A stretch of DNA of 64,000 nt, taken from positions 162,943,741 to 163,007,740 of the forward strand of contig CM041465.1 of NCBI GenBank assembly GCA_023213395.1, in the 5' to 3' direction. The DNA is from Cycas panzhihuaensis. Taxonomy: Eukaryota > Plantae > Cycadophyta. The stretch's first letter is position 1. Every line of letters begins with the position of its first letter. Shown here piece by piece: positions 27,821 through 53,842 of this stretch. A program made the translations under genes and the position numbers. A model generated the notes under the pieces. The model had not been told where the DNA came from and ran no database searches. It saw only the letters and a program-made list of their open reading frames with translations.

Positions 27821-30800
27821 TCATATGTTATTTCACCTTATAGGACGATCTATGAAAAGTCTTATGTATTCAATTTTAAAATTTTAACTACCTTAATTTT
27901 TATAAAAACTTATCTATCTAGTCTGAAAATTTAAGTTATTTCATTTCAATAAAGCCCATCTCTAATAGTATTGTTTGAGGCGCTTAAACATGTTATTTCC
28001 ATTGTAAAGTTATTCTCATCTTATTTGTTAAATCAATTATATATTTTCATCTCATATGAATAGTCAAGTAGATTGATTTAAGTATAACTATTGTAAGAGT
28101 TCAAACTTTATATGATATAGGTTGTAAGAGTTTGAAGCTTACAGAATAATCTCATATTTTTATTATTCATTAATGTAATCAACATCTTATACAAATTATT
28201 GTTTTAAATCTTTAATTTCATTCTAATCTTAAATGTCTTTTCCTTTTCTATTACTAAAATAAAAACTACGAAAAAATATATATAGCAATTATATGTATAC
28301 TTAGGTTGCTATACTTCAAGATGTGGTATTTTAAATGTAATTTGTGTTCTTTAAGGATTGCCCATGATATTCGGTCAAAAAATTATGAAATATCATTTTT
28401 GCAACTTTTTATTTTAAATGAATATTAATAGAAAGGCAATGATAACTATCAACAAAGTCTAGTTTTGCCAGTAAAAGGTATCCATTGAATTTCAACTCTA
28501 TGCATAACTCCCATGTGACAAGGTATTGGAAAGCACTCAACTTCCAACATGATTACTAGACACTTATCATTTATGATATATAAGGGCCATCCAACTTCCC
28601 TATCTGTCACTTTGACCATTGACTAGTCACACTACTTCATTCCATATGACCATTACCATTTATGATATATAGGGGCCATCCAACTTCCTTATTTGTCACT
28701 TTGACCATTAACTAGTCACATTACTTCATTCCATGTCTGTGATGTTTGCACCACTAGAGTTTTAGAGGTTCAAATGATCAATGGCACTACCCCATGGCAA
28801 TTTGCAACATATTTTACTATTACATTATGCCAACCAAAATGTCAAATCAATCATAAGGGCATGATCACCCACTGGCTACGATGATTTTCAGATATTTAGG
28901 ATTAAAGTATATCAACTCTTTTGTGTCTGTTATGTATAAAGAGTAGGGTTTTCATTCTAATTGTGCATACAAAATAGAGTCCAAATGTCTAATGCACCCA
29001 TTAATTATTGCTTTATAATATAAATTCCATAAATAGCTAATATTCCCTTGTATGCATATAAACAATGTCCTTGATAAAAAGTAGACACAATCTAGAGCTT
29101 ATTACATGGTCAACATAATAAAGGTTTAAATATTACAATCACATGTCATTTCAACTTATAGGACGATTCTATGAAAAGTCTTATGTATTTAATTTTAAAA
29201 TTTCAACTACTTTAATTTTTATAAAAAGACTTATCTATCTAGTCTTAAAATTTAAGTTATTTCATTTCAATAAAGCTCATCTTTAATAGTATTGTTGAGG
29301 GGCTTAGACATGTTATTTTCATTTTAAAGTTATTCACATCTTATTTGTTAAATCAATTATATATTTTCATCTCATATGAATAGTCAAGTAGATTGACCGA
29401 GTAGAACTACTGTAAGAGTTCAAACTTTATACGATATAGGTTGTAAGAGTTTGAGGCTTACAGAATAATCTCACTTTTTTATTATTCATTGATGTAATCA
29501 ACATCTCATACAAATTATTATTTTAAATCTTTAATTTCATTCTAATCTAAAATGGTTTTTTGTCTTTTCTATTACTAAAATGAAAACTATGAAAAAATAT
29601 ATATATCAATTATGTATACTTAGGTTGCTATACTTCAAGATGCAATATTTTAAATGTAATTTGTGTTCTTTAAGGACTAGCCATGATAATCGATCAAAAA
29701 ATTATAAAATGTCATTTTTACAACTTTTTCTTTTAAATGAATATTAATAGAAACGCAATTATAAGTTTTAAACTATTAACAAAGTTTAGTTTTACTAGTA
29801 AAAGGTGTCCATTGAATTTCAACTCTATGCACAACTCCCTTGTGACAAGGTATTGGAAAGCACTCAAGTTCCAACATGATTCCTAGCCACTTACCATTTA
29901 TGACATATAGGGGCCATCAAACTTTCCCATTTGCCACTTTGACCATTAACTGGTCACACTACTTCATTCCATGTGACCATTACCATTTATGATATATAAG
30001 GGCCATCCAACTTGCTTATCTATCACTTTGACCATTAACTAGTCATACTACTTCATTCCATGTCCGTGGCATTTGCGCTGCTAAACATTTAAAGGTTCAA
30101 ATGATCAATGGCATTATCCCATCGCAATTTGCAATATATTTTACTGCTACATAATGCCAGCCAAAATGTCAAACCAATCATAGAGGCGTGATGACCCACT
30201 AGCTACCATGATTTTCACATGTTTAGGATAAAAGTAACTCTTTTGTGCCTATTTTATGTAAAGAGTGGGTTTCTCATCCTAATTGTGCATACAAAATAGA
30301 GTCCAAATGTCTAATGCACCCATTAATTATTGCCTTATAGTATAAATTCTATAAATACTTAATATTCCTTTGTATGTGTATCAATAATGTCCTTGATAAA
30401 AAGTACACACAAACTAAAGCTTACTACATGGTCCACATGGTCAACATAATAAAGGTTTAAATATTACAATCATATGTTATTTCAACTTATAGGATGATTC
30501 TATAAAAGGTCTTATGTATTCAATTTTAAGATTTCAACTACTTTAATTTTTATAGAAAACTTGTCAATCTAGCCTTAAAATTTAAGTTATTTCATTTCAA
30601 TAAAGCCCATCTTTAATAGTATTGTTGAGGGGCTTAAACATGTTATTTTCATTTTAAAGTTATTCTCATCTTATTTGTTAAATCAATTATATATTTTCAT
30701 CTCATATGAATAGTCAAGTAAACTGACTGAGTAGAACTATTGTAAGAGTTCAAACTTTATACAATATAGGTTGTAAGAGTATGAAGCTTACATAATAATC

Positions 30801-31786
30801 TCATTTTTTTATTATTCATTGATGTAATCAACATCTCATACAAATTATTGTTTTAAATCTTTAATTTCATTCTCTTAATGGGTTTTTCCTTTTCTATTAC
30901 TAAAATGAAAACTATGAAAAAATATATAGAACAATTATGTGTATACTTAGGTTGCCATACTTTAAGATGCAATATTTTAAATGTAATTCGTGTTCTTTAA
31001 GGATTATCCATAATAATCGATTAAAAAAATTATGAAATATCATTTTTACAATTTTTTTTAAAATATTAATAGAAAGGCAATGATAAGTTTTAAACTACCA
31101 TCAAAGTTTAGTTTTACTAGTAAAAGGTGTCCATTGAATTTCAACTCTATGCACAACTCCCTTGTGACAAGGTATTAGAAAGCACTTAATTTCCAACATG
31201 ATTCCTAGCCACTTACCATTAATGATATATAGGGGCCATCCAACTTCCCTATCTGTCACTTTGACCATTAACTAGTCACACTACTTCATTCCATGTGACC
31301 ATTACCATTTATGATATATAAGGGCCATCCAACTTCCTTCTCTAACACTTTGACCATTAACTAGTCACACTACTTCATTCCATGTCCGTGATGTTTGCAT
31401 CACTAAAGTTTTAAAGGTTTAAATGATCAATGGCACTATCCCATGGCAATTTGCAACATATTTTACTAGTACATGATGCCAGCCAAAATGTCAAACCAAT
31501 CATAGGGGCATGATCACCTACAAGCTGCTATGATTTTCACATATTTAGGAAAAGATTATCTCAACTCTTTTGTGCCTGTTGTGTATAAAGAGTGGGTTTT
31601 TCATCCTAATTGTGAATACAAAATATAGTCCAAATGTCTAATGCACCCCTTAATTATTGTTTTATAGTATAAATTCTGTAAATAGCTAATATTCCATTGT
31701 ATGAGTATCAACAATGTCCTTGATAAAAGGTAGACACAAAGTAGAGCTTACTACATGGACCACATAATAAAGGTTTACATATTACA
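27821..31786. repeat. Tandem array of three ~1.32-kb units, each with an internal ~89-bp duplication
   Basis: Units start at ~27821, ~29139 and ~30470 (TCAYATGTYATTTCAMCTTATAGGA). The internal repeat CATTTATGATATATARGGGCCATC occurs twice per unit. Confidence 0.96.
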
Positions 31787-34340
31787 AACTTTTAGCATAA
31801 GATTGTTTCATTATTGTTTCCTCTCAAATTGAGCCATCTATAGGCATCAGATACAAATAATGAAAATGTAAGTTTCTAAAGTATAGATTAATCATAATGG
31901 TCAGAAGACCTATCCAAAAACATATCTCAAAGATGCGACATGCATCTCTCCTATCAATAAGTGATCACAATGGAGAATGTCCTAAGCAAATGTTCCCCTA
32001 TATTCAAATACACAAAAAACAGATGGGATTTCTTAGAACCTAGAGGTAGTGTTACTCAAAAACTGTGTATGCTTTAAAGATAACATTTACCAAAATATAG
32101 AATAAATTTACACAAATACCAAAGCCAACTATCATTTCCCATTTTTAAAGCTAATTACAACTATTTCAATTATGCAATCATAACTCTTGGCATCCACCTG
32201 ACATGGTTCTATAATGCACAAAATAACTATAGAAGGTCACAAGAGATTGTAAAGGAAATTGTTGGAGCTACAATCCTCATACAAATGCAGCCACCATCAC
32301 CCGAAGCAAAATGAAGAGATGCCTGATGACATTACCATCTACCATCATGTTGCAACTACCACAATGAAAATAATAACTAAGATTTTGTGCTTTTATATAT
32401 GCCAATACATGCTTGTGGCAAATGATTGGCACAACCACATCTCCATTGTATAGGTAGAAAGACAGGCTAATAAATAATAAATAATACTAATGCATACTAT
32501 ATAATAGTCTAGAAGTGTTGATAAACACTCTTAATTTTGATATGGGCAATGGCCATTAAAAACGTAATTTCACCGAAAGACAACAAATTATGCATCTATG
32601 CATAAACAACTCTACACACCATCGAAGGATCTTCAAACATTTTTCTCCATCTACCAATGCACGTTGGAATTTTCCCCTTGTTTTTCTTCCTTGATGCAGA
32701 GATTATGTATTTAATGCACGTTAGAGTTTCCCCCTTCTTATTACCCTTAAACTTCACCCAATTGTTTTTACCTTTCCACATGGATTGCATGTAGAAATTC
32801 ATGATGATTTTTGTGAAATTTTTTGTTTTTCTTTTTCCCTTTTTTTTTCCTATTTTTGTTTACAATTACTCCCACTGCATGCCATGGAGTAAATGGTCAA
32901 GGGCAAAGTTAGTTGAAAGTGCCTATCAACAACAAAATACATGTATACACACATACAATGATTTTAATAATGAAGGTTAAGATTATTATTATTATTATTA
33001 TTCAATTCCTTTTTTAAGAGTGAATAGGCAAATATTTTAGATGCTTTTGCCTCTATACTCATATGCTCTCCTAAATTGATAAATCATATGCGCCTTCAAT
33101 AAATAATATATAAATCAAGAATGTTATTAATTTTGCACATATAAATATGTGTGTCGATGTGTTTATTGTGCCACATGTATACGTGTGCTGTATATATATA
33201 TATATATAAAACTATGACTACAACATCTGAATATATAAGTCTATTATTTCATATATTGATATATTTTACTAATAAAATCAAGGGATAAAGGGAATAGAAT
33301 AACATTGCAAGAAGAAAACCATCAATCTCGTGAAGATGGTAGTGTTAATGAACATCAAGGTCTTCATACCCCATGAATAAATATGTGAGTGAGAGTGATT
33401 TAGCACACCCTTCAAAGTCAGTACTCGCATTAACAAATGCGAGATATGATGCCGCTAAGATCTGACATAATGCGACTAAGATTTGACATAGTGTCGCCAC
33501 AATATCTCCACGATCTAGGTTATCACCCCAATGCAGATAATCTCCCCGAGGTGGATATGAGCCCCAATATGGGCATTATTCCAAGATTTCTCCCCCATAA
33601 TGTTCATTTAAGAATTCAAGTTTCTCTCTAAATTTGATAGAGTTTATTAAACTAAGTGCATTTGTGAATATGTCTACCACTTGTTCTTTAGTGCTATAAT
33701 AAACCAATTTCAATTCACCTTACTATATTAACTCTCTAATAAAGTGATATGTTTTAATGTGTTTTATCCTGCCATGAAACACCAAATTCCTAGTTATCTA
33801 AATAACACTTTGATTATTACAAAGCAACTGAGTGAGACCAACATGTTCTTCTTGTAAATCTTGAAGTAATCTTCTAAGCCATACTATTTTATATGCTTAC
33901 TTTTTAGAAAATAAGCATGCAAAGCTCTATACCATGTTAGAAAAATAATATGATATGCATGCAATAAACAAACTAAGATAGTGAGTTAATGATACAATAA
34001 TGAATCACAAAGAAAATGAAATATATACAAATGAACACAAAATATAGAGAAATGGTCAAAACTCAAATTAGAATGAATGATAATGTATATACTTATAGTA
34101 TAAGTTCACCATCAATAAAAGAACCTCATAGATCAATCTTAGAGGTAACACATATATCTATGTGGCTCGTAACCTTAAATATAAAATACACATAAAGAGA
34201 GTGTATATATGAGTGATTATATAATTGAGTATTACATCCAAAATTTTTCCCATGTAATAGCCAATTAAATAATGAAATATCACATCAAATGATAAATACC
34301 AAGTCTTTAAATAAATATTGGATAAGTTGCTACAATAATA

Positions 34341-34726
34341 TAATCAACTCATGATGTCCATATAAATAGAACACCATCCACCGGACCACATGGATAACCA
34401 ACAATTGTGATCGCCAATTAACTAGAATGTTCTTTTACATGCGTAGTTCAATTAACGCAAGCAAGAATAGTTGTAAAGGAGTCCCACCTCTTGCTTAAAT
34501 GAGATAATGTAATCAGTCTTCAAATAAGTTGGATCATAATCTGTTGTAATAATAAAATCAACTACTAATATCTATATGAAGAGAACATCATCCACCAAAC
34601 CACATGAGTAACTGGCCATTATGACCACTAGTTAACTAGGATGTTCCTTTGCATATATAATTCAATCAATGCCAAAAAGAGTAGTTGTAAAAGAGGCCCA
34701 CATTTTACTTAAATAAAAAATGCAAA
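34341..34726. repeat. Diverged tandem duplication (~215-bp period), possibly small LTR remnants
   Basis: AATCAACT...GAACAYCATCCACC...TAGTTGTAAA...CTTAAAT occurs twice. AAACA followed by TCCCCTCTTT (LTR end + PPT-like) lies at ~34771-34785. Confidence 0.7.
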
Positions 34727-35579
34727 ATCTCCAAATAACTATATGATCTCAAATTACCTCTATGGTCTAAAAACATCCCTCTTTAAGCTTACATCATGTC
34801 ACAATGGGCTAAAAATCCAATAATAAATGCTAATACATGACTTAACAGATAGATGTGACTCAAGTATAACATGAATGATTCTCTCATATAATAAAGTTTA
34901 ATATAAAATAGATTCTCTAAAGCCAAAGTATGAGACCTTAATACATGTTATTCCCCCCATTTGAGATACATCATATCAACAAATATGATTGAACCTTTAA
35001 AAATACATGTATGTACATAAAAAAACTGAAAAAATAAAGAAAAATAAAATTTTAAGGAAAAATTTTGACTTTGACTCAAAATTTCTATATTAAATCAACT
35101 CCAAATAATATCAAGTGGCATGTCAAATGAAAACACTTTTAGTTACAAATCCAATGCAATTGACGGCACTGAAAATAGAGTCTGTATGCTCAAGTTATAG
35201 TTAAAACAGTAACAAGGACTCCATAAAAACTGAAATTTTAGAGGTTTAGCCCCTTTCACTAGTTGACTGAAGGTCATATGGCACCTCCATACGAATAGGT
35301 CTTGTGGGCTAAAGGGGTTGGGCAAATTTCAAATATTTATCCAATCTTACTAGTTTAATTTTTTCAACCGCAAAAGAAATTAAGCCGATTTCATAAAAAT
35401 TTATGTCTGCCTCCTCAAGAAAAAACTTAATCACGCCCAAATTAAAAAATTTAAAACATTGATATCAACCTTAATATTTAGTGTTCTAAAAAAGACTTTT
35501 TAGCCATTTTGCTCTGCACGCAGTCGCCATTATTCTTGTGTTACAGGGGCGGCAATGGAAGATATTGAGCCAATGATTG

Positions 35580-36045
35580 TGGTTATGCCCTGCTCGACAA
35601 AGCATGTTTCTAAGGGAAATTTTTCACTCAGTACCATCCATCCCAAAGATCCCCATGACCATCTAAATGCAGCAACAAATAAATAGATGGTTATCACCAC
35701 CAATACAGAGAAGCCCTTGGAGAGGTCCTTATCTCCTCCAAACTTCACTATGTCTATCGATTTCTGAATCGGTTCAGCATGGTTAATGGGTGGTACTATT
35801 TTCTTCCAAAACCAATGTTTTCTCCACTAAATAATCATCTCTTCGATGGGTACCCCCTTGGTTTCTAGTAATAGAAAGTATACAAAAGCAGTCACGATAT
35901 AAATTTGACCTGCAAAGAAGAGAAATATTCCATACTTGAATGCACATAGAAGAGAAAGGAAGAACTTCCATACTTGAATGCACATAGAAGAGAAAGGAAG
36001 AACTATGCAATGATAAAAGTGAAGAGAAGGTTGACAGCCATGGTT
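35580..36045 (-). pseudogene. STP: Sugar transport protein (STP/MST, STP7-like) C-terminal fragment, circularly permuted
   Basis: Reads [30 protein letters not shown]...[30 protein letters not shown], then VKFGGDKDLSKGFSVLVVITIYLFVAAFRWSWGSLGWMVLSEKFPLET...QGIT. Contains a 38-bp tandem duplication (35928-36003) and two stops. Confidence 0.93.
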
Positions 36046-37429
36046 TGCTTATCATTTTCCGTTAGTGGTATGACTATACACAGATGAAATCCTAGTATAT
36101 TCATCGCCTTTCTCTGTCTGTGTTTCTGAAAGCATTCGATTCAAACGAATTTGGTTAGTATAATTTGGCATAAAAACACTCCTGAATTTTGTTTTCTGTT
36201 TGTTTGTTTCTATGTTATAGGCGGCGGCGAGATGGCTACAGTGAACAAAGGATGGCAGTGACTTCTATATCATTATCCAGGACTTTAAATCTTTTGACTC
36301 ATAATGGAAAATGGCATGTGAACGTGTCAATTCTACACTATGGTCTCATTCTTCACAATCTTGGAGTTTACATAGACAATCAATAGTTGTAGCAGCAACA
36401 TCCACAATTGATGTTATAAACAGTTATGACAAGACCTTTTATTTTTTTTGTATATTCCATGCAATAGATTTGATGTGCTTGACACCCTCTTACTGATAAC
36501 AGATTTGTTGTTTATTTAAGGTGATTAGGCCTACATTTGGAGTTCCTTTGCAATAATTTTTTGCTTCAAACAATACACTTCAAATATGTGTTTTTCAACT
36601 TTTGAATCAGAACCTACATGTTATAAAATGGACCCATATGCAGCGTAAAATATGGTCACAAAAAGCATAAATTTGCAACTTCAAAACAACTCTATAACTT
36701 TAAAATCTCGAAAAAATAGGCTTAAAAAACAATCCTAAAACAGCATCAAAACATGCTTCAAAGTAGTCTTCAATAATAGCTCTAAATAAGTTTTAAATAG
36801 CCCTTAAACAATAAAATAACTCATTTAAATTTTAAAAAATAATGATAAAATAGTATCAAATACTTCAAAAAAGTCTCTTAAAAAATGTGCATAAAGTGCA
36901 ACAGAAGTTGGCTTCAAATAACTTGAAATAATTCTTCAAATGAATAATGAATAGGTCACTAATTAGGCACAATACAGGTTCTTTAAAAATTTGATGAGGC
37001 TTCTAAAAAGTCAAAAGGATAACATGTACAAAGACTCTATAATGTTTCCTTCAAGAATTCAAACCTTAGAATCTGATACCATATTAGAAAATAAACATAT
37101 AAAGCTCTATACCATGTTAGAAAAATAATATGCTATGCATATAATAGATAAACTAAGATGGTAAGTTAATGATATAACAATGAAGCACAAAGAAGATGAA
37201 ATATATACAAATGAACTCTTAATACAGAGAAATAACTAAAATTCAAAATAAAATAAATGATAATATATATACGTATAATACAAGCTCACCATCAATGAGG
37301 GAACCTCATTGGTCAATCTTAGAGGTAGCACACATCTCTATATGACTCATAATCTCAAATATAAAATATACATAAATGTAAAGAGAGTGTATATAAGAGT
37401 GATTATGTAATTGAGTATTACACCCAACA

Positions 37430-37904
37430 TTGATAAAGTTGTTTTGTATTCTGCTTTTATCATAGATAAAGATATTGTTGCATATTTTTTTAAACTCCAT
37501 GTTATTGTTGTTGAACCCAAACTGAATGTATGTATGTCCTGAAGTAGATTTCTTGTCATCTGCATAACCTACCAAGTCTAAGTTTGTATAGCCAACCAAT
37601 CTGTAGTCCTCTAAAAACCTATAATGTAATCCATATCCAATAGTACCTTTGATATACCTAAGAATTCTCTTGGTCACTTACCAATGTTTTATCTTAGGCT
37701 CATGCATAAATCTAAAAACCATATTAACTACATACATAATGTCTGATCGAATTAAAGTCAAGTAAATTAGACTATTTATTAGATGCCTATATAGTATATG
37801 ATCAATTGATTCTGATTCCTCAAACTTGGGCAATTTCAACTCAACCTCTCTTGGAATTGCAAGTGGCTTGCAATTATTCATGTTAAGCTTGTCCAATAGG
37901 TTCA

Positions 37905-37974
<70 letters not shown>

Positions 37975-40314
37975 ATATCCTAATTTCATCTTGTCAAACT
38001 CCAATGCCTAAGAAGTAATGCATTAATCCCAAGTCCACCATCTCAAATTCTTTGCACATATCTTTCTTGAATATTTGAGACAAGTGATCACTATTTCCAA
38101 TGTATACCAAATCATCAACATATAAGCCCACAATTAGTATGGAGTTTCCTTCTAATTTGATGTATAAATTGAGATTTGATTTGGTTATTTCGAATCCTTT
38201 ATCTTTGAAATATTTATCAATCCTAGAGCACCATGCTCTTAAGTGCTTACTTAAGTCCATACAAGACCTTTTTAAGTTTGTAGACCTTATTTTTCTTCTC
38301 CTTTCACTTCAAATCCTTTATGTTGTTGGATATAATTTTTTTCATCTACATAGTCATTTAAGAAAATACTTTTTACATATATTTGTTGTACTGTCCAACC
38401 TTGTTGTGCAATTAAGACCATGATTAATCAGGTTGTTTCTAACCTTATCATAAGTGCAAATGTCCCATTATAATCTATGCACTTAATTTGAGCGTAACCT
38501 TTTGTAACTAAACTTGCCTTATATTTATCAATAGATCCATCTAATTTATACTTGATCTTATAAACCCATATAGTCCCCATGGCATTCTTGTTAGGTGGCA
38601 GATCCACTAACTCCCATGTATCATTATACTCTCTTTTCATTGTTGTCTTCCATCATTCTTAATCGTTTACCTCTTCAAAGTTGTGAAGCTCATTAAACTC
38701 CATAACTTAAGTCATAATTACAAAATATGCCCATTGAAATCTTATAATCCTTCTCTCAAAATTGGTATCTAACATATTTGAAAGGTTATGATCCCCCTTT
38801 GTATCCATTTTAGGATCATTTATTTTAAAAAAGAGAGTCATGTTTCATTTGTATTAGATACATTTGTATCTTTAATTTTGAGTCCATTTCAACCATGATA
38901 TTTTTACCCTTATCTTTTTCAACTTCTTCTTGATAAAATTCATCTTATTTGAAGATGACATCCCTATTTATAATAATCATTTTTTCATTTAGATTATAAC
39001 GTTTATAGGATTTAAAAGAGTTATAATATCCTATGATGATACATTTAATGCTCATCATTCAACTTCTTTTCCTTTAATTTAGGACATATGCATAAGTTAT
39101 GCACCCAAATATTCTCAAGTGTTTGATGCTTAGCTTATAACCTATGCAAACTTCTTTTGGTAACTCATCTAACTACTTTGGTGGTACACTTGTTCAATGC
39201 ATGGACAGTTATGTGTACAGCTTCTACCAAATATTTATTTCCTAGATACTTGTCCTTAAACATATTTCTTGTCATTTCCACAATTGTTCTATGCTTTCTT
39301 TCAACAACCTCATTTTGTTGAGCAGTGTAAGGATTTGCGAATTATTTTCGGATTCTAAAATACCTACAATAATTTTTTAATTCATTTAAAACAAATTTTC
39401 TCCTATTGTCTAATCTTAAAATGAAAATTTTAAGTTCACTTTGTCTTTCAACCATACTCATAAAATTAATGAAATATTGTAATGCATCTAACTTAAACTT
39501 TAGGAAGTATACTAAAGTCATCATTGTGAAGTCGTTAATAAATGTCATAAAAAACTTACTTCCTCTAAGTTAAACACATTTATTGGACCACATAAGTCTA
39601 TGTATATCGATTAGAGGGTCCGTTAACCCTATAACTTTCATTAGGGAATATTTCCCTTTGTTGTTTTCGAAGTACACATCCTTCAAATATTTTTTTACTA
39701 TGCTCGAAAATAGATAGTTCAATTACCATGTCTATTTTCTTCATTAAGTTCAAACTATTGTAGTTTACATGGCCAAATCTTTTGTGCCATGTTTCACTGT
39801 CTACATTGGTTGATGTCTTTCAGGCATAATAGTCTACCAGTGGAATAACTAATTTGAACAATCTGTCACTAGTCATTTGTTCTTTGACCACAATTACATT
39901 GTTTCTTAGTTTATCTTTGATGGTGCATTCTCCATTGTTAAAAATTATCTTATATTGTTGTTCTACCATCTGTCCTACTAATAGAAAATTTTTCTTTAGT
40001 GTTGGGATATGAAATATACACCTTGTTTCTCCAAAATCAATGTATACGGAAATATTCCCTTTCTCAACTAATGTTTGAGTGGTGTTATCACCAAACATAA
40101 TCTTATTTTTCTTGGCATTGTCCAATTTTTTAAACCACTCTTCTTTATAAATCGTGTGTAGAACATCTTAAATTTATGTACCAATTATCTCCTTCCTCAT
40201 TTGCCATCAAACTTAAAAGAAATAATCTTTCATCTCATATTTTTTCCAAAGTGTATTAGCAGTCCCCATTTGTGAATTTGATCTTTTTGCAAAGCAATTT
40301 TTTTCCAAATGCCC
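37430..40314 (-). pseudogene. Decayed copia pol of the outer element (PR, INT, RT, start of RH)
   Basis: FINDFTMMTLVYFLK (INT), WVYKIKYKLDGSIDKYKASLVTKGYAQ and VGLYVDDLVY (RT), KRILRYIKGT. An (AT)n(AG)n microsatellite at ~37905-37971 sits inside RT. Confidence 0.92.
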
Positions 40315-40584: not shown

Positions 40585-43500
40585 TCAATTGGCAAACCAA
40601 TCGGCTATTGCATTACCCTCTCTATACGTGTGACAAATTTGAGATTCCACCTTAGATCTCAACGCCTCTTGAGCATCCCTCACTATATTTGCATTATGCC
40701 ATTCTACATCAGTATCCCCTCTAAGAATCCTAATCACATTTAGTGAGTCTCCTTCGATCACCACCTTGTCATAATCATCATCTTCAACCATAAGCACTAC
40801 TCTCTACATGGCCTTTAATTCAACCTTATGGTTTGTTTGATTACCATAATATTCTGTGAAGGCCCACCTCACTCTACTATCTAGGTATCTGCATAAACCT
40901 CCCCCACCTGCTTGCAGGGTTGCCTTTAGACGTCTTATTAAAGTTTATTTTAACCCAATTGTGTATAGATCGCCAAGAGCATTTTCTTCTCCTGACCTCA
41001 ATTATATTAGGTCTCCTTATTCCCCATCCATCCATGATGTTACTCTCTCTTTCCAAAATACTTTCCTCATCCCAAGTTCTAATCAATTCCATTGTCGCCA
41101 AACATATCATCTCATAAAGCCTAACCTCATCCAGTTCCTTCCCTTGAAATAATCTTATGTTTCGCTCTTTCCAAATGTTCCACACCACCATTAGCAAGAT
41201 CATTTTCTAGAGAAATCCCAAAGCTATACTCCGGAAGGGAGATTTCCACATCCTCCATTGATCTTCAAGGGTCCTTGGGCTCACCCAAAATATCCCTAAT
41301 TAGGACCAAATACCATCCCAAATTCTTTTAGCAAAAGGACAATGAATGTTGATATGATCAATCGTCTCCTCATCCTTCTTACACAGCACACACCTGTTTG
41401 GCATGGCAATACCGTGCCTATGAAGGTTGTCAACTGTTAGGATCTTTTTCTTCAGACAAAGCCACCAGAAGACCGCCACCTTGGGTATTAAACCCAACTT
41501 CCACACCCCTGCCAGTAAAGGATCCTTTTCGATTCCCACCTCCATACATATGGCTTGGTATCCATCCTTCACAGTATACTCGCCCGAGGGGGCGTTAGCA
41601 TATATGGCCACATTTACTTTAGGCCTTTTCGGAATGTAGTGTTGAACAAGCTCTCTTTTTAAGGCACAAATATTCTATTACAAACCTCCTTAAAGGGATT
41701 AAGTAATTGCTAATTAAAGTGAAAGGGCATCTCCAAGAGTTGTAACTTATAATTGAAAAGGCTTATCATGCACTTATAAATGAGGCCTCCAATGCATTGA
41801 AGAGCATCACTTATTTTTATCAATCAATACCAATTGGTCTTTTGACTGCAAATTTACTTTCAAGTGTACTTATGTTCTTTGAAATTTTTTAATTGTGCTC
41901 CAGTTACGGAAAATGTCTGTAACAAGTGGTATCAAAGCGTATTGATTCATGTGTATAAAATATATCTAATTGATATCATATCCAATTGACATTCCTTCTA
42001 TTGTTCTATCTAATTGGCTACTACTGCCATCGCCATAGCTACTCATGAAATTCATCTCCCAAATTATCAATGTGTCTTATTAACTGAGCTACTACATCAC
42101 CTCACCACCATTATAATTAATCACTCCATCGTTGTGACTATCATTGTAGCTCAACAAAATTGCTAAAGTCATTCATAGCCCTATTATTTCATCTGGTACT
42201 TCTATCATTTGTGATATGTTATACTTCACAAATAGTACATTCATTTGCATTACGTACTTTACCTAAGAATTTCAATTTCCATACACTTGCATCCGTAGAA
42301 AATATGTTCACTTAGTTTAAAAAAAAAAATCTGCACGTTCTCCCTTTCAAACCAACTATCGCCCCAATTAAATCACTAATATAATCATAGGTACAATGCG
42401 TCGTAAATCAACAGATTGAAGACGTTAAGCATAATTTACCAAAATCAATCTTTACAATTAGATTTATATTCAAATCAACTAAAATATACTTTCCCATTAT
42501 CATCTTGTCAAGTTATTCCAACGTTGCTAGTAAATTATTGCACTGTTGTGCGCACATTTTAATCTAATTATTGCAAATTGTACACTCTTCTCTGTGTCTT
42601 TCATTATTTGTTCCGTTCCTTCGTCTTTTTGGAGCCGTTGCCATTTCTGCGTCTTTCCATCGTCCATCATTCTCTCTGTCCCTGGCGTCGTTCTTATCTG
42701 TGCCCTCCCTGTTTTCTTACGTTACCGTTCCATTCCATTCCATTTGGTCCCCGTCTCATTCAATTTCATCTATCTGCGTTCCTCTGTTGCAACTCCTTTC
42801 GTTACGTTTTCGTCCGTTGTCTGTTGTAATTTTCTTCATTCATAAAACCTAAAATAATATTATATCCATATATATATAAATATATATGTATATATATGGT
42901 ATTAAGAGAATAACAACCACCAATATATTGGATACAGTATACAATTTCACAAATAACATAGTACCTTTATCCTTAGTTATATTAAAAATTATTATGTTTT
43001 CTATTACATTAATTTTACACTAATACATTTATTCTCCTTAATTATTTCATAATTATTTTATCAATGTTGCACTTTCATTTCATATACGTTTAATACCATT
43101 ATATTATACTTTGATGTCACTTTAAATATCTACAACATTTTAAATTATATCCTTTTCAAATACAATATAGAGTCATTTCCATATTTAGTCTATTGATCAC
43201 ATAGATAAGACACTTGACTAGTCTCAAGGTCCTTGTCATATCTGTAATCTCTGATTGTCATTAGATAATACTTCAATCTTACGTTAAACATTTAAGTTTA
43301 ATTCTCTTCTAAGTCATCACCTATTCCATCAATTTAATATCCTTTGGATATTGAATAAGTTGACCGATCTTGTCGTTTATATATGAGTGTGACCTACTTG
43401 AAATACATTCAGTAGTATCAAGCAAGATCAAAATATTATTTTGGATCAATCAAACACGACAGAAAGGCAGTGGAACCACACTTAACACAATCATTAAAAT

Positions 43501-46500
43501 AATGAACACTGAAGAGATAGTAGACAATACCATCAAAAAATATCATCAAACCGATCACTCAAGCAGTGCAAATATCAAACGCTCTCTTAAATCATACATT
43601 ACATCAAATCTTGGATAAATTGATAATCATAGCAACGAACAAGAAAGAAGATATGATTGTTCCAGATTCGGAGGATGAGGCAATGAGTCGGCAGTCTCAT
43701 ATCAAAAATCAAACCGTTAAAAATTATTCCAGTCCTCAGATGTCTCCAATTAATACTGAGAATGAAGCTATCAGAAAATACCTTAATGAGTATCCCAATT
43801 TGACCCCTGAAGAACAGAAGATAGTGGATTTTCAAGCATATTTCAACTGCTTACAAAATATTCAAACATAGAAAAAGAAAAAGTTAGAAAAAATTACTAT
43901 ATAACGTTTCAATATGGAACAAAAATCACACGAGCCAAGAGTATGGATTCAACAAATGGAAAACTACTTTCGCTTAATGGAGATTGAGCCAGTAGGGCAA
44001 GTTCCGTTAGCCACCCTGCACATGGATGGGATAGCATGCAAATGGTGGCAGTGTCTAGAACAAACCTCTTTTTGAACTCAACTTCCAACTTGGAAAGAAT
44101 TTGTGTGTTTATTCATCGAACAGTTTGATACTGTATCTAATCGTAATTATTATTGTGAATTACGAAGATTAAAACAGACAGGTTCCGTAGAAGAATGTAG
44201 TGCAGCATTCACGAGGCTAAGCTATGTGTTAGAAGATATTCTGACTAATCGACTTATCCAGTTATATATGGATGGTCTGATAGCAGAAATCCAAGCTGAT
44301 GTTAAAATTCAAGAACCAAAGGACCTTAACAAGGCAACACAGTTAGCCAAAATACATGAAGATAAACGCAATGCCTTACGCAAAATAGGCACAGATCTTT
44401 ATATTTCTCCACTTAGTCGACATAATCTTTTACTAAGTGCTCAACACATACACGTATTAATCAGCCTGAATCGACCTGCTAAACCAATCATTCAAAAAAC
44501 AAAAACAGGGTAAGAAGAGTTAAGAAAAAGAAACCGATGCTTCAGATGTGAGGAGAAGTGGGAACTTGGGCTTAGATGTCAAAAGAACCAGTTATATACA
44601 ATCAGACTACTGCCAGATGAAAATATTGATGAAGAAGAACAAGAATTATAAAATAATCAAGGAAATTGTTATCATTCAGAACATCACGAAAGCCACAGTA
44701 ATCTCTAAGACGTCCATCTGCAAATGTCACTATCATTTATAAGCAGTTTTAATCAATCAAATACCTTAAAATTACAGGGATCTATCAAAAATCAAGTTGT
44801 AACAATCTTGATAGATTCAGGTAGCACACATAATTTTATTGATCAAAATTGTGCACAACAACTGAGATTATTTCCATTAAGGACTCCTCGTTTCTAGGTC
44901 ACTGTTGGAGGAAGACAGGTAATCTCTAGCCAAGGTATAATGAAGAACCTTAACATCACACTAAACAATGTCAGCATTATAGAAGATTTCTATGTCGTTG
45001 ATGTCAGAAGTGTAGATATTGTATTGGGCAGTCAATGGCTCAGTACACTTGGAACCTTCGAAATGAATATGGATGAATAGTTTATGCGATTTAAGAAAGA
45101 AGGATGAATTATCACGTTATCAAGAAAAAGATCGAACAAAACTAACGTCATATCACGCGAGAATCAGGGTGAAGAAGTCAAAAAGCAACCACAAGCACTC
45201 TAAAAACACAGTCAAGATTTCCAACCAGAAGAATCTTCTAATAAATACCTGCAACATTCGTCTAATCATCTAATAGACTCTACTACAACGAAGGACAACG
45301 TACATTTAAGGGATTGCAATCGTTCGACTATGTTTCGTGTGCGAAACATCTTTAGGGGGAGGAATTGTTACAGACCTCCTTAAAGGGATTAGGTAATTGT
45401 TAATTAAAGTGAAAGGGCATCTCTAAGAGTTGTAACTTATAATTGAAAAGGCCTATCATGCACTTATAAATGAGGCCTCTAGTGTATTGAAGAGCATCAC
45501 TTATATTTATCAATCAATACCAATTGGTCTTTTGACTGCAAATTTACTTTCAAGCGTACTTGCATTCTTTTAAATCTTTTAATTGTGCTCCAATTACGGA
45601 AAAGGTTCGTAAGATATTCTCCCCCCATTCCTAGATCCCTTGTAACTCCTCAAAATATTTCTAGACTTTTATCTCTGCTTTGTCCCTCCCAGTAGTCTTT
45701 GACCTTAGAACCATATGCATCTTCGCAGACAGCTTACATAATACCGACGCTCGGGCTATCATTCAATTGATAATTACCACACCATTTGTCCTCACATAAC
45801 TTCATACTTTCCCCATTCCCCAAGTTCCATCTCATGCCAGAGGTCAAGATAGGTCTCGAGTGGACCAGACTCCTCCATATTGGAGACCCGTAAACCTCCC
45901 CCACCTCGTCTTTCAGGAAATGCTTTCCTCCCAGATATTTTTTAGAAATGATCTTGCCCCATTATCCTCCTCCCTTCTTCACCAGTCTCCAGCCCAGCTT
46001 GGCCGCCAAGGCTCTATTAAAAGGGGCTAATCTTCTGATGTTAAGCCCTCCCGCCCATCTGGGCATACAAACTTTGTTCCATGTAACTAGGTGGATTATA
46101 TCCTTTTCTTTAGTTCTGGACCACGGGAATCTCTTCTAAATGCCTTCTCAGATTGATATAAACCTGCTTGGGATCCTAAATATTGACATCATATACACCG
46201 GAATAATCTGCAAAGAAGCAGCCACCAACTGAATCTTTACAGCTGGGCTGAGGAGGGTTCCTTTCCAGCCAGCCAGTTTCCTTTGCATCCTATCTACAAT
46301 GGGGTTCCAAAGGGCCTTACTCATATTCCCAACAAATAGACGCATTCCTAGATAAGTAGACAGCAGAGATCTGATGGGCATCCTTAACTCCCTACTTATC
46401 TTTCTTTGCAGTTTCTCATGGGTATTTATAAAGAAGACAGAGCTTTTTCTAGGTTTATTCTTTGATTTGTGGCTCTCTCAAAGGCTTGGAGTCTAGCCTT

Positions 46501-49939: not shown

Positions 49940-51502
49940 TCTATTTGTGAAACATAACAAAGAGCTACTAAGCTAGCCAACTACTCACCCAACTCATGGC
50001 TTTGGAACTGACCAGTGGTTCCTTTCCAGAGTTGTCCTCTCTGCAGCTCCTTTTCGTCTCCTCCTTGATGCCGATCTTTCCTTTAATTACTATGTCTCGG
50101 CTCTTGTCCCCCCTTATTATTTGAGGGGACTACAAGTGATCTTAGGGTCGAGCAGAAGCTACATATGCCCATAGGACTCCTAGGCCTCCTTCCTCTGTCT
50201 CTCCGCAGAGATCTCTCTAAGCGCCTCTTTAGTAGTGGTTCTATTAGAGGGTCGTCTCTCACCCCATTGCGATGGTCGTTCCGGACCTCGTCTCTGATTT
50301 GGAGACTTTCCAGCCCCGCCAAGTCTCCCTACCCTGTGGAGCCGCCACTACCATAATCAAGGTTTGCCCATGATTACCGTTGCATCCGTTCAGTCGCTCC
50401 AAACCTAGTCCATTTGATTACACCTCATTACTGCTTTCCAAGTGCCCATTTTTATGACAATAGAAATATCAGATTGTTACTCTACCCCTTGGATTTCTTC
50501 TTCATTGTCCTTGGTTTCTACCGCTAGGACTTTGACATTTTTCTCTTCCTTGAGATCCATAAGTTTGAACTTAGCTTTGATCAAACTAGGCTTGAAAATA
50601 TCTGTCTTTGGAATTGATTTTGCCTTTGATAGAAGCGACTTAGACATTGCCCTTGATGATTACCTTGACTTTGATGATAACCTTGTGCTTGATAAGCTTG
50701 ACCTTGCATTTGATATAGATAATATACCTTACCATTAAGATATGATTAACTTTTTTCAAAAAATACATACATTAAAATGTGCCTAGTTAACCTGAAAATA
50801 GACCACAACTATCCTTGTAACATAATGATACTAACCTATACGCATACAAATAATGAAATCTACTCTTTTTCACAATCTTTGATAATTGATTACATCAGAT
50901 AAATATACATAGTAACTCTTTCTACCACAAATAGATATGTAAATGCAAATAAGAGCACATTAAGGGTTGTCCTTCAAACAATAATGTAAGTATCAAAAAT
51001 CTACCTACTACTTTGTGGACGTCGATAAGATGAAGCGACAAATACGCAAATTCAAGGGAGAGGCACAAATGTGCAATCGCAGTCAAAAATATGTAACCCA
51101 CATAGTAAAGTGTTAATGCTTTAATATTTATATGGCACAACATAAGGAACTTGTAACTGCAAAGTTGTTGCATATTGTTTATGTGCAATTGTTGGGTCCA
51201 CAAATAGAAAATGCCACAAAGTATAAATATCAAATGTTTTAAAGATATACAAATTATGTAATGTGAAATAATATTTTGACCTCTGCACAAGTAATTCACA
51301 GTCGTGAGGACTCCACACAATGTAAAAAAGAAAAAAATGGCACAAATATGTATATAGCCATAAAATATTGCAAACCAATCCACAAACGCAAATAATAATG
51401 TAAAAAAATATAACGCGACACAAATGTTAATACGAGAAGCAATGCAAATATTTTATAAGTTGCATTGATACTTTTTACAGTCATCAGTGGATTACATAAC
51501 CA

Positions 51503-51770
51503 GATGTAAAGACGAAAACCTAAGGTCCCTTTGGGACTATCATATACCCCAACGAACTTGCTCACAGTGCTAACAATGGCCTAAATATTGCTATCAAGCT
51601 TTTGGAGCCTATCAAACAACAATTTTCATTAATCTCTTACATTGATTTTTACTAGTTAACTTGTGTCGTCACAATCGAGGTGACTAGAGGGCCTAATATT
51701 CCTTTTCACCCTAGCAGAGAGGACAAAATTGAAGTACCTGGGGAGGGACGCCTCACTAATGCTACCAACG
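51503..51770 (+). pseudogene. APX: Intron-less cytosolic L-ascorbate peroxidase fragment
   Basis: Single frame [86 protein letters not shown] matches the cytosolic APX core. Two stops; not represented in the ORF track. Confidence 0.95.
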
Positions 51771-53842
51771 ACTAAACAAAAAGTGGATCGAGAAAAGCAA
51801 TAGTAAATAGGAGAGATGAATTTGCAGTTCCATACCGAGGACCATCAGTTAAAAAGATGGAATGAAGTGGTAAGTTATTTAAGGCATGTTGCCTTTGAAT
51901 TCTACCAGATGAAGAAGACAACAATATAGTACTCAAACAAGGATGTCAAGAATAGTTTAGCCTAAGAATAATAATCCACAACATGCGTAAGTAAGAAAAA
52001 TATAAATATTAAAAAAGACATAAAAATCCCAATGTAATGATCAGTCAAATATAGACACATGAAGTATGCAAACATGGAAATACACGAACATAGACCAAGA
52101 GGCCTAAACGTGCAGGAGGATGCTTCTTCCATAGAGAGAACTTAGATCTGTAACTTTACCAGAAACATTATATAATACGTTTTCGTAAATATTGTAAACA
52201 GACTTATCAAAAAGATCAAAAAAAAAAAATTGAGTGATAAAAATAGATATACCAAAAATGTGCACAACAAACTCTTCATAAACTCCTCTGTAGATAGCTT
52301 CTCAAATGTGGCTTTGAACACCCGAGCAATGGCTCTAACTACATAAACAAAACTCTACAAATAAAGAAAGACGGCTTTGATACCAAATGATAGAATCAAG
52401 GGGTAGAGGGAATAGAATGACAATGTAAGAAGAGAACCATTAATCCCATGAAGTTGGTGTTGTTGATGAACACCAAGGTCTTCAAACCCCATGAATAAAT
52501 AAGTGAGATTAAGAGGAATTTAGAATACTCCTTAAAGTCTACTACCGACTGACGTTAACAAACGTCGGATATGCTCCCACCAAGATCTGACATAATGCGA
52601 CTAAATTTTGACATAATGTTGTCACAATATCTCCATGATCTAAGTTATCACCCCAATGTCAATAATTTTCTAAAGGTGGATACAAGCCAAAATATAGGCA
52701 TTATTCCAACATTTACATTAGCACACACATATACATGTTTGTTTGTGTATACCCATTATGTCACACTACATATATACATATACATGAAACCACAAAAATA
52801 AAAAAGTAAACTAAATTGTTGAAAGATATTACTATGAAAAATCATAATTTCATTTTGTTAACGTTGAATGAACAAATCCATAGATAAAACCAAAACTTAC
52901 CAAATACACCATGCTATACTATATAATTTAGTAATAAAGTGTCTTAAACAATTAGATACAATTTCATGTTAGTATGACTCAATTGAGAAACATATTCATA
53001 TTTGTAAATCAATTCACAAGATTCCAAACAAAAGAACAGCACTTTGCACATATTCTCATCAAAGAAAAGGTGGAAAATGAAAAACAATATAACAAACAAT
53101 CTTATTATAGTATTTAAGAATGAACAAGAAAATTTTAAAAGAACACCAATGAGAATCAAATAATACCAACATGAATGACATAATAATAATCGTTTTCACC
53201 ACAATCCATTTTGCATCTAAATTGCAAGCTAAGTGTACTCATCCTCCTAATCATCTCACCGAGTTAACATCAAATTACATGTTAACATCAAATTGCATGA
53301 GCCAAATTACCTGGCTGTGGTAGTTCCACCATTGGATTTATTTGGGCATACCAATGTCAAACCAATAACACATGTACTAGCTTCATAATAATATATTAGA
53401 CGTAGTAGTTTTCGCAATGGTGCAATACATAAAATTTTTACAATATTGTTACATGCAATAGCCTTATTTAGATGGAATCATTTGTCAATAGTTGCAACTA
53501 TACTAGGGTATTGACACACAATTATCAAAAAATTGGCGTATCTAGAAAAAAAAAAAAAAAAAACAAGTTTTAAGAATATTCCAATAAATATCTAATTGTT
53601 CAACTGTAATCCCTTAAGCAAAACATAAATCAAAGCATGAAAATATAGGCAAAACCTCTTAGAAATATATTTACCTGGAAATGCAATCAAACTCCTTGTC
53701 ATCCATAATGCAATCAAAATCTTCAAGATGCAACAATGCAATTGAAGTTTTCCTATAGATGCCTCTCTTACAGCATGAAATTCTTTTTAATTTTCAATTT
53801 TTATGTATTTGATTTGACTTATTTATTTTATTTTTCTGAGGA

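Follow-up and report, generated by a model that had tools for sequence, protein, structure and literature searches.

The 64,000-nucleotide stretch of Cycas panzhihuaensis DNA analysed here (the window) contains an old retrotransposon, within which lies a dead 461-base piece of an STP sugar-transporter gene. The analysis confirms that the two halves of this piece are swapped, as if the gene had been followed for one lap round a circle. The locus thereby raises the question of how a host-gene fragment can come to be permuted inside a mobile element, and whether a circular molecule has to be invoked to explain it.

The permuted transporter fragment

The minus strand encodes, from 36041 down to 35791, the C-terminus of an STP protein (AVN...WFWKKIVP) and then, from 35748 down to 35581, a part of the protein that natively lies upstream (VKFGGDK...QGIT). 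These are referred to below as the B part and the A part, respectively (Table 1). In the native protein the end of the second piece, ..QGIT, adjoins the start of the first, AVN... Against the Pfam Sugar_tr profile (PF00083) the earlier piece, at 35964-35830, corresponds to profile positions 405-448 and the later piece to positions 343-382, with scores of 27.9 and 24.7 bits against a cutoff of 22.3. Comparison with the solved transporters AtSTP10 and AtSTP6 gives the same picture, in that residues 443-485 and 490-502 precede residues 375-423 in the fragment, with E-values of 4e-12 for STP10 (443-485) and 2.7e-9 for STP6 (375-415).

Relatives in the protein databases that keep the native order (P0001, P0003, P0005 and others) read ...VKFGGDK..LSKG...WSWGPLGW... 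followed by the C-terminal part. The VKFGGDK of the A part is identical in P0005, and amino-acid identity to P0003 amounts to 54-73% over the last three transmembrane helices and the WFWKK tail. A protein search for junction-bearing ORFs returned a single sequence, the native-order fragment P0001. For comparison at the DNA level, 80 native STP loci were drawn from plant-containing metagenomes, the closest of which are 74-80% identical to the fragment; L009, L012, L019, L029 and L030 are cDNA-like and L041 is genomic. In a comparison with the internal region of the host element over its entire 2.8 kb, native DNA aligned only at 36038-35789 and 35749-35582. The Pfam profile, STP6 and STP10, and the 80 native loci thus agree on the swapped order that the initial annotation had described on the minus strand.

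Table 1. Coordinates of the STP fragment, its flanks and the elements that enclose it
Feature	Positions	Strand	Evidence or remark
Outer decayed Copia pol (RVT_2, RNase H start)	37432..38640	-	RVT_2 1e-16, 2.7e-14
5' LTR of host element, starts TGTTGGG	37084..37431	-	Direct repeat, 85.7% identity to 3' LTR
Primer-binding site TGGTATCAGA, tRNA-iMet type, 2 nt past 5' LTR	37072..37081	-	tRNA 3'-end complementarity
Upstream low-copy flank	36046..36240	-	Depth 6-16
AACCA, upstream outer end	36041..36045	-	AACC = native ATAACC
B part, STP C-terminal segment, natively downstream, first here	35791..36041	-	Translation, Sugar_tr profile, STP10, native DNA
Exact tandem duplication, 38 bp, 2 copies, 100% identical, frameshifting	35928-35965 / 35966-36003	-	Repeat alignment
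Stretch between B and A, PINHAEPIQKSIDI, 42 nt, contains back-junction	35749..35790	-	DNA comparison
A part, VKFGGDKDLSKGFSVLVV...WSWGSLGW...FPLETCFVEQGIT, natively upstream, second here	35581..35748	-	Translation, profile, STP6, native DNA
AACCA, downstream outer end, = end of ...CAGGGCATAACC + A	35580..35584	-	AACC = native ATAACC
Downstream low-copy flank, left limit approximate	35300..35579	-	Depth 9-110
3' LTR of host element, short purine run GGGAAAAA before LTR	33904..34245	-	Direct repeat

The lap measures 461 nt, or 423 nt once the 38-bp duplication is taken away, and the period given in the initial annotation is thus borne out. The shorter figure is close to the ~425 nt that separate the V of VKFG from the stop codon in the nearest natives. 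Translated on the minus strand from 36041, the fragment gives 12 residues, the duplication, 71 residues and then VKFGGDKDLSKGFSVLVVITIYLFVAAFRWSWGSLGWMVLSEKFPLETCFVEQGIT as far as 35581. The B part, which starts AVNLLFTF, holds both the duplication and two in-frame stops (36005-36003 and 35829-35827). With 141 of ~510 codons, a swapped order, two stops and a frameshifting duplication, the piece is, on its sequence, a pseudogene fragment and no transporter, and a function is not likely.

Between the two parts the 42-nt stretch PINHAEPIQKSIDI has no significant match to native tails or UTRs and no second copy in the window. It may represent the variable tail of the parent together with the first bases of its 3'UTR, or it may be filler. 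As a correction to the earlier description, these 42 nt match no native.

The two parts have aged alike. Identity to the natives is 74-76% for A and 74-80% for B, and T or A stands where natives have C or G at 18-21 positions in A (against 4-6 in the reverse direction) and at 17-23 in B (against 10-16). As judged from these substitutions, a single source captured at one time, followed by decay of methylated DNA, would fit both parts. A separate origin or age of the two halves was rejected, as far as can be told, on the similar divergence and decay pattern.

Host element, flanks and breakpoints

The STP piece is carried, in sense orientation, by a non-autonomous LTR element of 3.5 kb that lies on the minus strand; the LTR pair and the primer-binding site (Table 1) thus uphold the placement and orientation given in the initial annotation. 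The LTRs start TGTTGG and end ..CTAA(T/A)A, and a clear target-site duplication is absent. Their divergence (K2P 0.163) marks the element as old. For the motif of the primer-binding site, 0.27 matches are expected in the window and 3 occur. No match to gag or pol was obtained with the tested ORFs inside 34246-37083, and hence the element is regarded as non-autonomous. No RNA families were detected in 33800-37500.

A decayed Copia element in turn surrounds the host element, which is inserted in its RNase H region; the RVT_2 domain of this Copia lies at 38640-37994, and its pol resumes at 33897 and below to reach its C-terminus at 33713-33576. Contigs of related plants join 33897 straight to 37443 or 37466, and so stand for copies of the outer Copia in which the nested element is missing; these empty-site joints confirm the nesting.

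The wider region is a multi-layer nest of transposable elements. Upstream of the integrase the outer Copia is broken by LINE/non-LTR-like ORFs at 40585-41611 (-), consisting of an RNase H-like ORF (40585-40797) and a zinc-binding reverse-transcriptase tail (41300-41611), and gypsy-like gag and protease sequences occupy 44103-44897 on the plus strand. The pair of direct repeats at 41678-41922 and 45368-45612 (245 nt, 92% identical, 3.7 kb apart) are possibly the LTRs of a small element, and a repeat scan found three tandem copies, 88-95% identical, of a ~1.32-kb unit at 27975-31765. The second host-gene fragment of the window is a processed ascorbate-peroxidase (APX) fragment at 51500-51770 (+), for which 80 residues were read in frame +2. 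It lies in TE-rich sequence beside a Copia-related stretch, 52390-52714, which is ~80% identical to 33272-33589.

Contig depth over 35372-36235 is 5-30, compared with 10^2-10^4 (summed) for the LTRs and most of the internal region, so that the STP piece sits within ~0.9 kb of low-copy sequence. By this measure, the 200-280 bp that adjoin the piece on each side do not look like element-family sequence. Neither flank shows STP homology (to the 80 native loci, genomic sequence included), a coding signal or an RNA-family match. The possibility that the flanks are an STP intron, UTR or neighbouring sequence was discarded for want of a match to those 80 loci. No homology was detected between one flank and the other (score 20, null 19.9). 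A direct repeat bracketing the low-copy block (35090-35126 and 36285-36322) proved not to be significant, and the idea of a nested DNA transposon of Pack-MULE type was set aside in view of the lack of convincing terminal inverted repeats. No joint that skips the STP piece occurs among the 15 joints listed of 394, which is weak evidence, and no clean sister copy came to light.

At the position where the outer ends of the piece would meet, natives read ATAACn GTG GCT; the two corresponding readings of the window are ..CATAACC-A-CAATC and ..GCAAACC-A-TGGCT. On these letters the overlap is certain for AACC (4 nt), and would extend to AACCA (5 nt) if the parent carried an A there. The 5-nt AACCA reported earlier is present at both ends, although the certain overlap to the native sequence is of 4 nt.

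The inner breakpoints can be placed against the gene structure of the natives. Genomic L041 reads ...CTTTTTCATAG|GTTTATGTTGCCATAATCTTGGGCCTAAAGTTTGG, the cDNAs L009 and L012 read ...TGTCAG|GTTGCTGTT..., and in five gene-call fragments STP homology ends just before the same Q-V. From this comparison the last STP intron is placed in phase 0, 27 nt upstream of the K (AAG) of KFG, as the aligned sequences indicate. The A part starts 24-27 nt inside the terminal exon, and the end of the B part falls within the tail or shortly after the stop codon, such that the terminal exon contains the whole fragment. There is no intron inside it, and the piece is therefore compatible with an RNA or a DNA origin. 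The initial annotation had proposed a search for splice sites at the points of the back-junction, but neither breakpoint coincides with one when L041 is set against the cDNAs. Canonical back-splicing is excluded, since the back-junction is 24-27 nt away from the acceptor of the last exon and the other breakpoint belongs to the same terminal exon, which has no donor.

Short homology at the back-junction was also considered. One heptamer, AGTTTGG, was noticed post hoc in natives L009, L012 and L019, where one copy coincides with the KFG codons and another follows the stop by ~20 nt, at a spacing of 440 nt; local alignments gave p values of 0.15-0.26, which are not significant. No tandem STP form is found among the 80 native loci. 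In the databases, the annotated plant protein P0002 (425 aa) consists of an STP C-terminal half, a mid-gene part and the C-terminal half again, and shows that partial tandem duplications of STP genes occur and are annotated as one protein.

Further information on the age and reality of the boundaries comes from four related runs, X1-X4, which represent other species at ~5x depth and of which about half of the contigs were read. The search for runs with this stretch found none of the source species and no RNA run, and in the best-matching runs the shared fraction of sampled words is 0.20. Identity between the contigs and the window is ~96% on the single-copy flanks, as would fit related species. 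Contigs of two organisms run across the upstream boundary at 36045/36046, namely X1 record 5 (36005-36308, 13 differences) and X4 record 28 (35966-36189). This junction is old and real, and neither the boundary nor the start of the back-junction is an assembly artefact. Five of the contig pieces listed have a terminus where the 38-bp duplication begins or ends, four of them at 35966 (records 4, 11, 19 and 28) and one at 36005 (record 5). This pattern fits relatives without the duplication; the duplication would then have arisen recently, in the lineage of the window alone. The contigs that cover the B part carry the same variant letters as X4 record 28, which is itself contiguous with the upstream flank, and hence most likely represent orthologous cargo.

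The B-part contigs pass the back-junction and then lose their fit at 35721 (X1, X2 and X4) or end at 35728 (X3), with X1 record 4 continuing past 35721 for 115 more letters that fit nothing in the window. They cross the back-junction by 20-28 letters, below the threshold of 31. None of the four runs provides an orthologue-grade contig over 35571-35720 or a contig that bridges the downstream boundary at 35580/35581. A single X1 piece (35581-35706) shows at least 10 differences and breaks off precisely at 35581, which is the behaviour expected of a native STP gene. Beyond the back-junction the relatives follow the window for 28 nt, so that for the closing half of the lap, as for the downstream boundary, the present assembly is the one source.

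The same contigs allow a comparison of the rate of change. The STP part differs by ~9-13% from the orthologous contigs of the relatives, at 35866-35914 and generally, and the flanks differ by ~4%. Most of these differences are T or A in the window and C or G in the contigs, and the gene-derived part seemingly decayed faster than the flanks in the lineage of the window.

Routes to a single exact lap

The exactness of the lap is a strong clue, since it arises either when a polymerase re-makes AACC and the growing strand re-pairs, or when a circle is cut once and ligated. The reading preferred here is that the locus is the fossil of the capture of an STP fragment by an LTR retrotransposon, through template switching of the reverse transcriptase with one extra jump; confidence and doubt in it are about evenly balanced. 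Template switching between co-packaged RNAs is the accepted route of gene capture for plant LTR elements, and the transfer from a 5' end to a 3' end is one that the reverse transcriptases of these elements perform in every cycle (PMC13317346).

On such a route, RNA of the last exon of an STP hexose-transporter gene would have been present beside the RNA of the element. The reverse transcriptase, copying the element RNA from 3' to 5', would depart at AACC(A) and land on the same letters within the codons for ITV in the STP RNA. It would then copy up to approximately the codon for V of VKFG, shift to a point shortly beyond the stop codon, on the same STP RNA or on a second one, and copy upstream again until AACC had been re-made, at which stage the growing strand could re-pair with the element RNA at the point of departure. 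The outcome would be exactly one lap in swapped order, with the cargo sense to the element. Three candidates for the middle move, namely an end-to-end jump on a short linear RNA, a switch at a short homology, and passage over a circular or tandem junction, all fit the sequence. Thereafter the copy would have decayed through C-to-T changes, two stops and the recent 38-bp duplication. The RNA template, the order of the jumps and the contiguity of the flanks in this scheme are all inferred.

Template switching would account for the permutation together with the exact lap, and for the presence at both ends of AACC(A), the counterpart of native ATAACC. It agrees with a host that has an LTR pair and an iMet primer-binding site and carries its cargo on the same strand, a condition of copy-choice between sense RNAs. 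The equal divergence of A and B, with a shared excess of C-to-T and G-to-A changes, fits one source and one event, and the breakpoints are not splice sites, so that ordinary back-splicing fails to explain the junction. The upstream boundary and the start of the back-junction recur in relatives, and the APX fragment provides a further processed host-gene piece within the same window. The position within an LTR element and the sense orientation of the cargo make reverse transcription more probable than a DNA route, by the modest factor that one locus can give. Against template switching, the ~200-280 bp on each side of the piece are low-copy and may be neither element RNA nor formerly contiguous, and neither an empty site nor a clean sister copy was found. 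The piece, being within one exon, bears no signature of intron loss and is compatible with DNA-level routes. Moreover, three switches are needed, the AGTTTGG homology at the back-junction is post hoc and of no significance by local alignment, and the contigs of the relatives diverge at 35721, with none over 35571-35720.

The initial annotation had read the locus as the capture of a circle. Its one-lap permutation, sense cargo within an LTR element and overlap of 4-5 nt are retained, but the circle is no longer a requirement, since a homology-guided return closes the lap exactly whether the template is a circle, a tandem or a linear piece with an end-jump. In its RNA form, a covalently closed, non-canonical circRNA of ~423 nt from the STP last exon would have been entered by the reverse transcriptase at AACC(A), copied for one lap and left again. 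This is unlikely, although the exact lap, the same-strand cargo and the overlap all follow from it, two switches suffice, and there is precedent in the circRNA-derived pseudogenes that are enriched near LTRs in mouse (PMC4897178). However, the junction lies off the exon boundaries, the acceptor of the last exon being 27 nt upstream of KFG and the terminal exon having no donor, and the sequence cannot tell a circle from a jump between the 5' and 3' ends of a linear piece. Non-colinear retrocopies can indeed form without circles (Dong et al., PMC4897178). The broader proposition, in which a ~423-nt circle of the last exon (RNA, or DNA formed via a short direct repeat) was copied for one lap into the retrotransposon as an instance of a recurrent process in this plant, whereby the Copia reverse transcriptase would bring small non-canonical circles of host origin into new element copies, is likewise considered unlikely.

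A DNA circle need not have involved reverse transcription. An eccDNA of ~420 bp from the STP gene, cut once and ligated into a chromosomal break in the element, would automatically yield one exact lap, and filled-in staggered ends would yield the AACC(A) repeat, with no RNA signature required. The size matches that of plant eccDNA: about half of rice eccDNAs measure 200-400 bp, with a median of 414 bp, and direct repeats of 7-15 bp promote their formation (PMC10948907). The occurrence of AGTTTGG at both breakpoints in the nearest natives offers a lead, and no more than that. This origin is nevertheless quite unlikely, as both the position in an LTR element and the sense orientation would be coincidental and the reintegration of such small circles in the germline is poorly documented. 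Alternatively the junction may already have been present in a linear template, through a partial tandem duplication of the last exon of the parental gene or replicative switching of the MMBIR/FoSTeS type, with which the microhomology is also in keeping. Partial tandem duplications of STP genes exist in plants, as P0002 illustrates, but none of the 80 native loci has a tandem form, the junction-bearing contigs of the relatives lack the remainder of the A part that a clean tandem duplication would supply, and the sense orientation in an LTR element is left unexplained; a pre-formed linear junction is thus decidedly improbable. Finally, the downstream half of the lap, 35571-35720, could be a misjoin or an artefact of alignment, given that no contig from the four related runs supports this interval or 35580/81 and that the contigs leave the window at 35721. 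Those runs are of other species, with the depth and coverage given above. The A part continues the 28 nt shared by the relatives without loss of frame or register, its decay and divergence are the same as those of the B part, and it ends exactly at the native position where B starts, as a chance misjoin would not. An artefact is consequently very improbable.

Relation to known systems

Gene capture by plant LTR elements through aberrant template switching is known from Bs1-type mosaics, Veju and BARE-2 (reviewed in PMC13317346). As with these examples, the present locus has a piece of a host gene between the LTRs of a non-autonomous element, on the strand of the element, with short microhomology at the junctions and a cargo that was dead on arrival or soon after. 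Unlike them, it is not colinear with the mRNA, its halves being swapped, and it shows an exact one-lap closure and extra low-copy flanks. With circRNA-derived pseudogenes (Dong et al. 2016, PMC4897178) it shares non-colinear gene parts, the lack of a poly(A) and an association with LTR elements. Those pseudogenes were described in mammals and have exon-exon back-splice junctions (PMC4897178), whereas the junction here falls in a terminal exon, 24-27 nt from the acceptor, with the other end near the stop, in a plant and inside the element itself.

The small eccDNA or microDNA of rice (PMC10948907) resembles the fragment in its size of ~420 bp, in a possible 7-nt direct repeat at the breakpoints and in a single turn, here with 42 nt that match no native. 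The fragment itself is seen as integrated sequence, for which heritable reinsertion of such a circle would have to be presumed, and the 7-nt repeat is taken from distant natives rather than from the parent. Within the STP family (MFS Sugar_tr, PF00083; AtSTP10, AtSTP6) membership is evident from significant matches to the profile and to solved STPs, but the fragment differs from the family in having ~141 of roughly 510 codons, a permuted order, two stops and a frameshifting duplication.

A literature search found no plant report of such permuted retrocopies among the titles listed. Whilst capture by LTR elements and mammalian circRNA-derived pseudogenes are both already known, a one-lap, non-splice permutation in a plant element is a new variant that lies between them. 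As a single locus it is a decayed pseudogene, whose value is that of a mechanistic fossil. If the circle reading is true, it would represent a route of gene-fragment capture and domain permutation that is undescribed in plants. If such cases prove to be common in one genome, they would provide a natural data set on how reverse transcriptase handles short host RNAs, by end-jumping or by way of real circles, and would also show a way in which permuted protein-coding segments can be generated.
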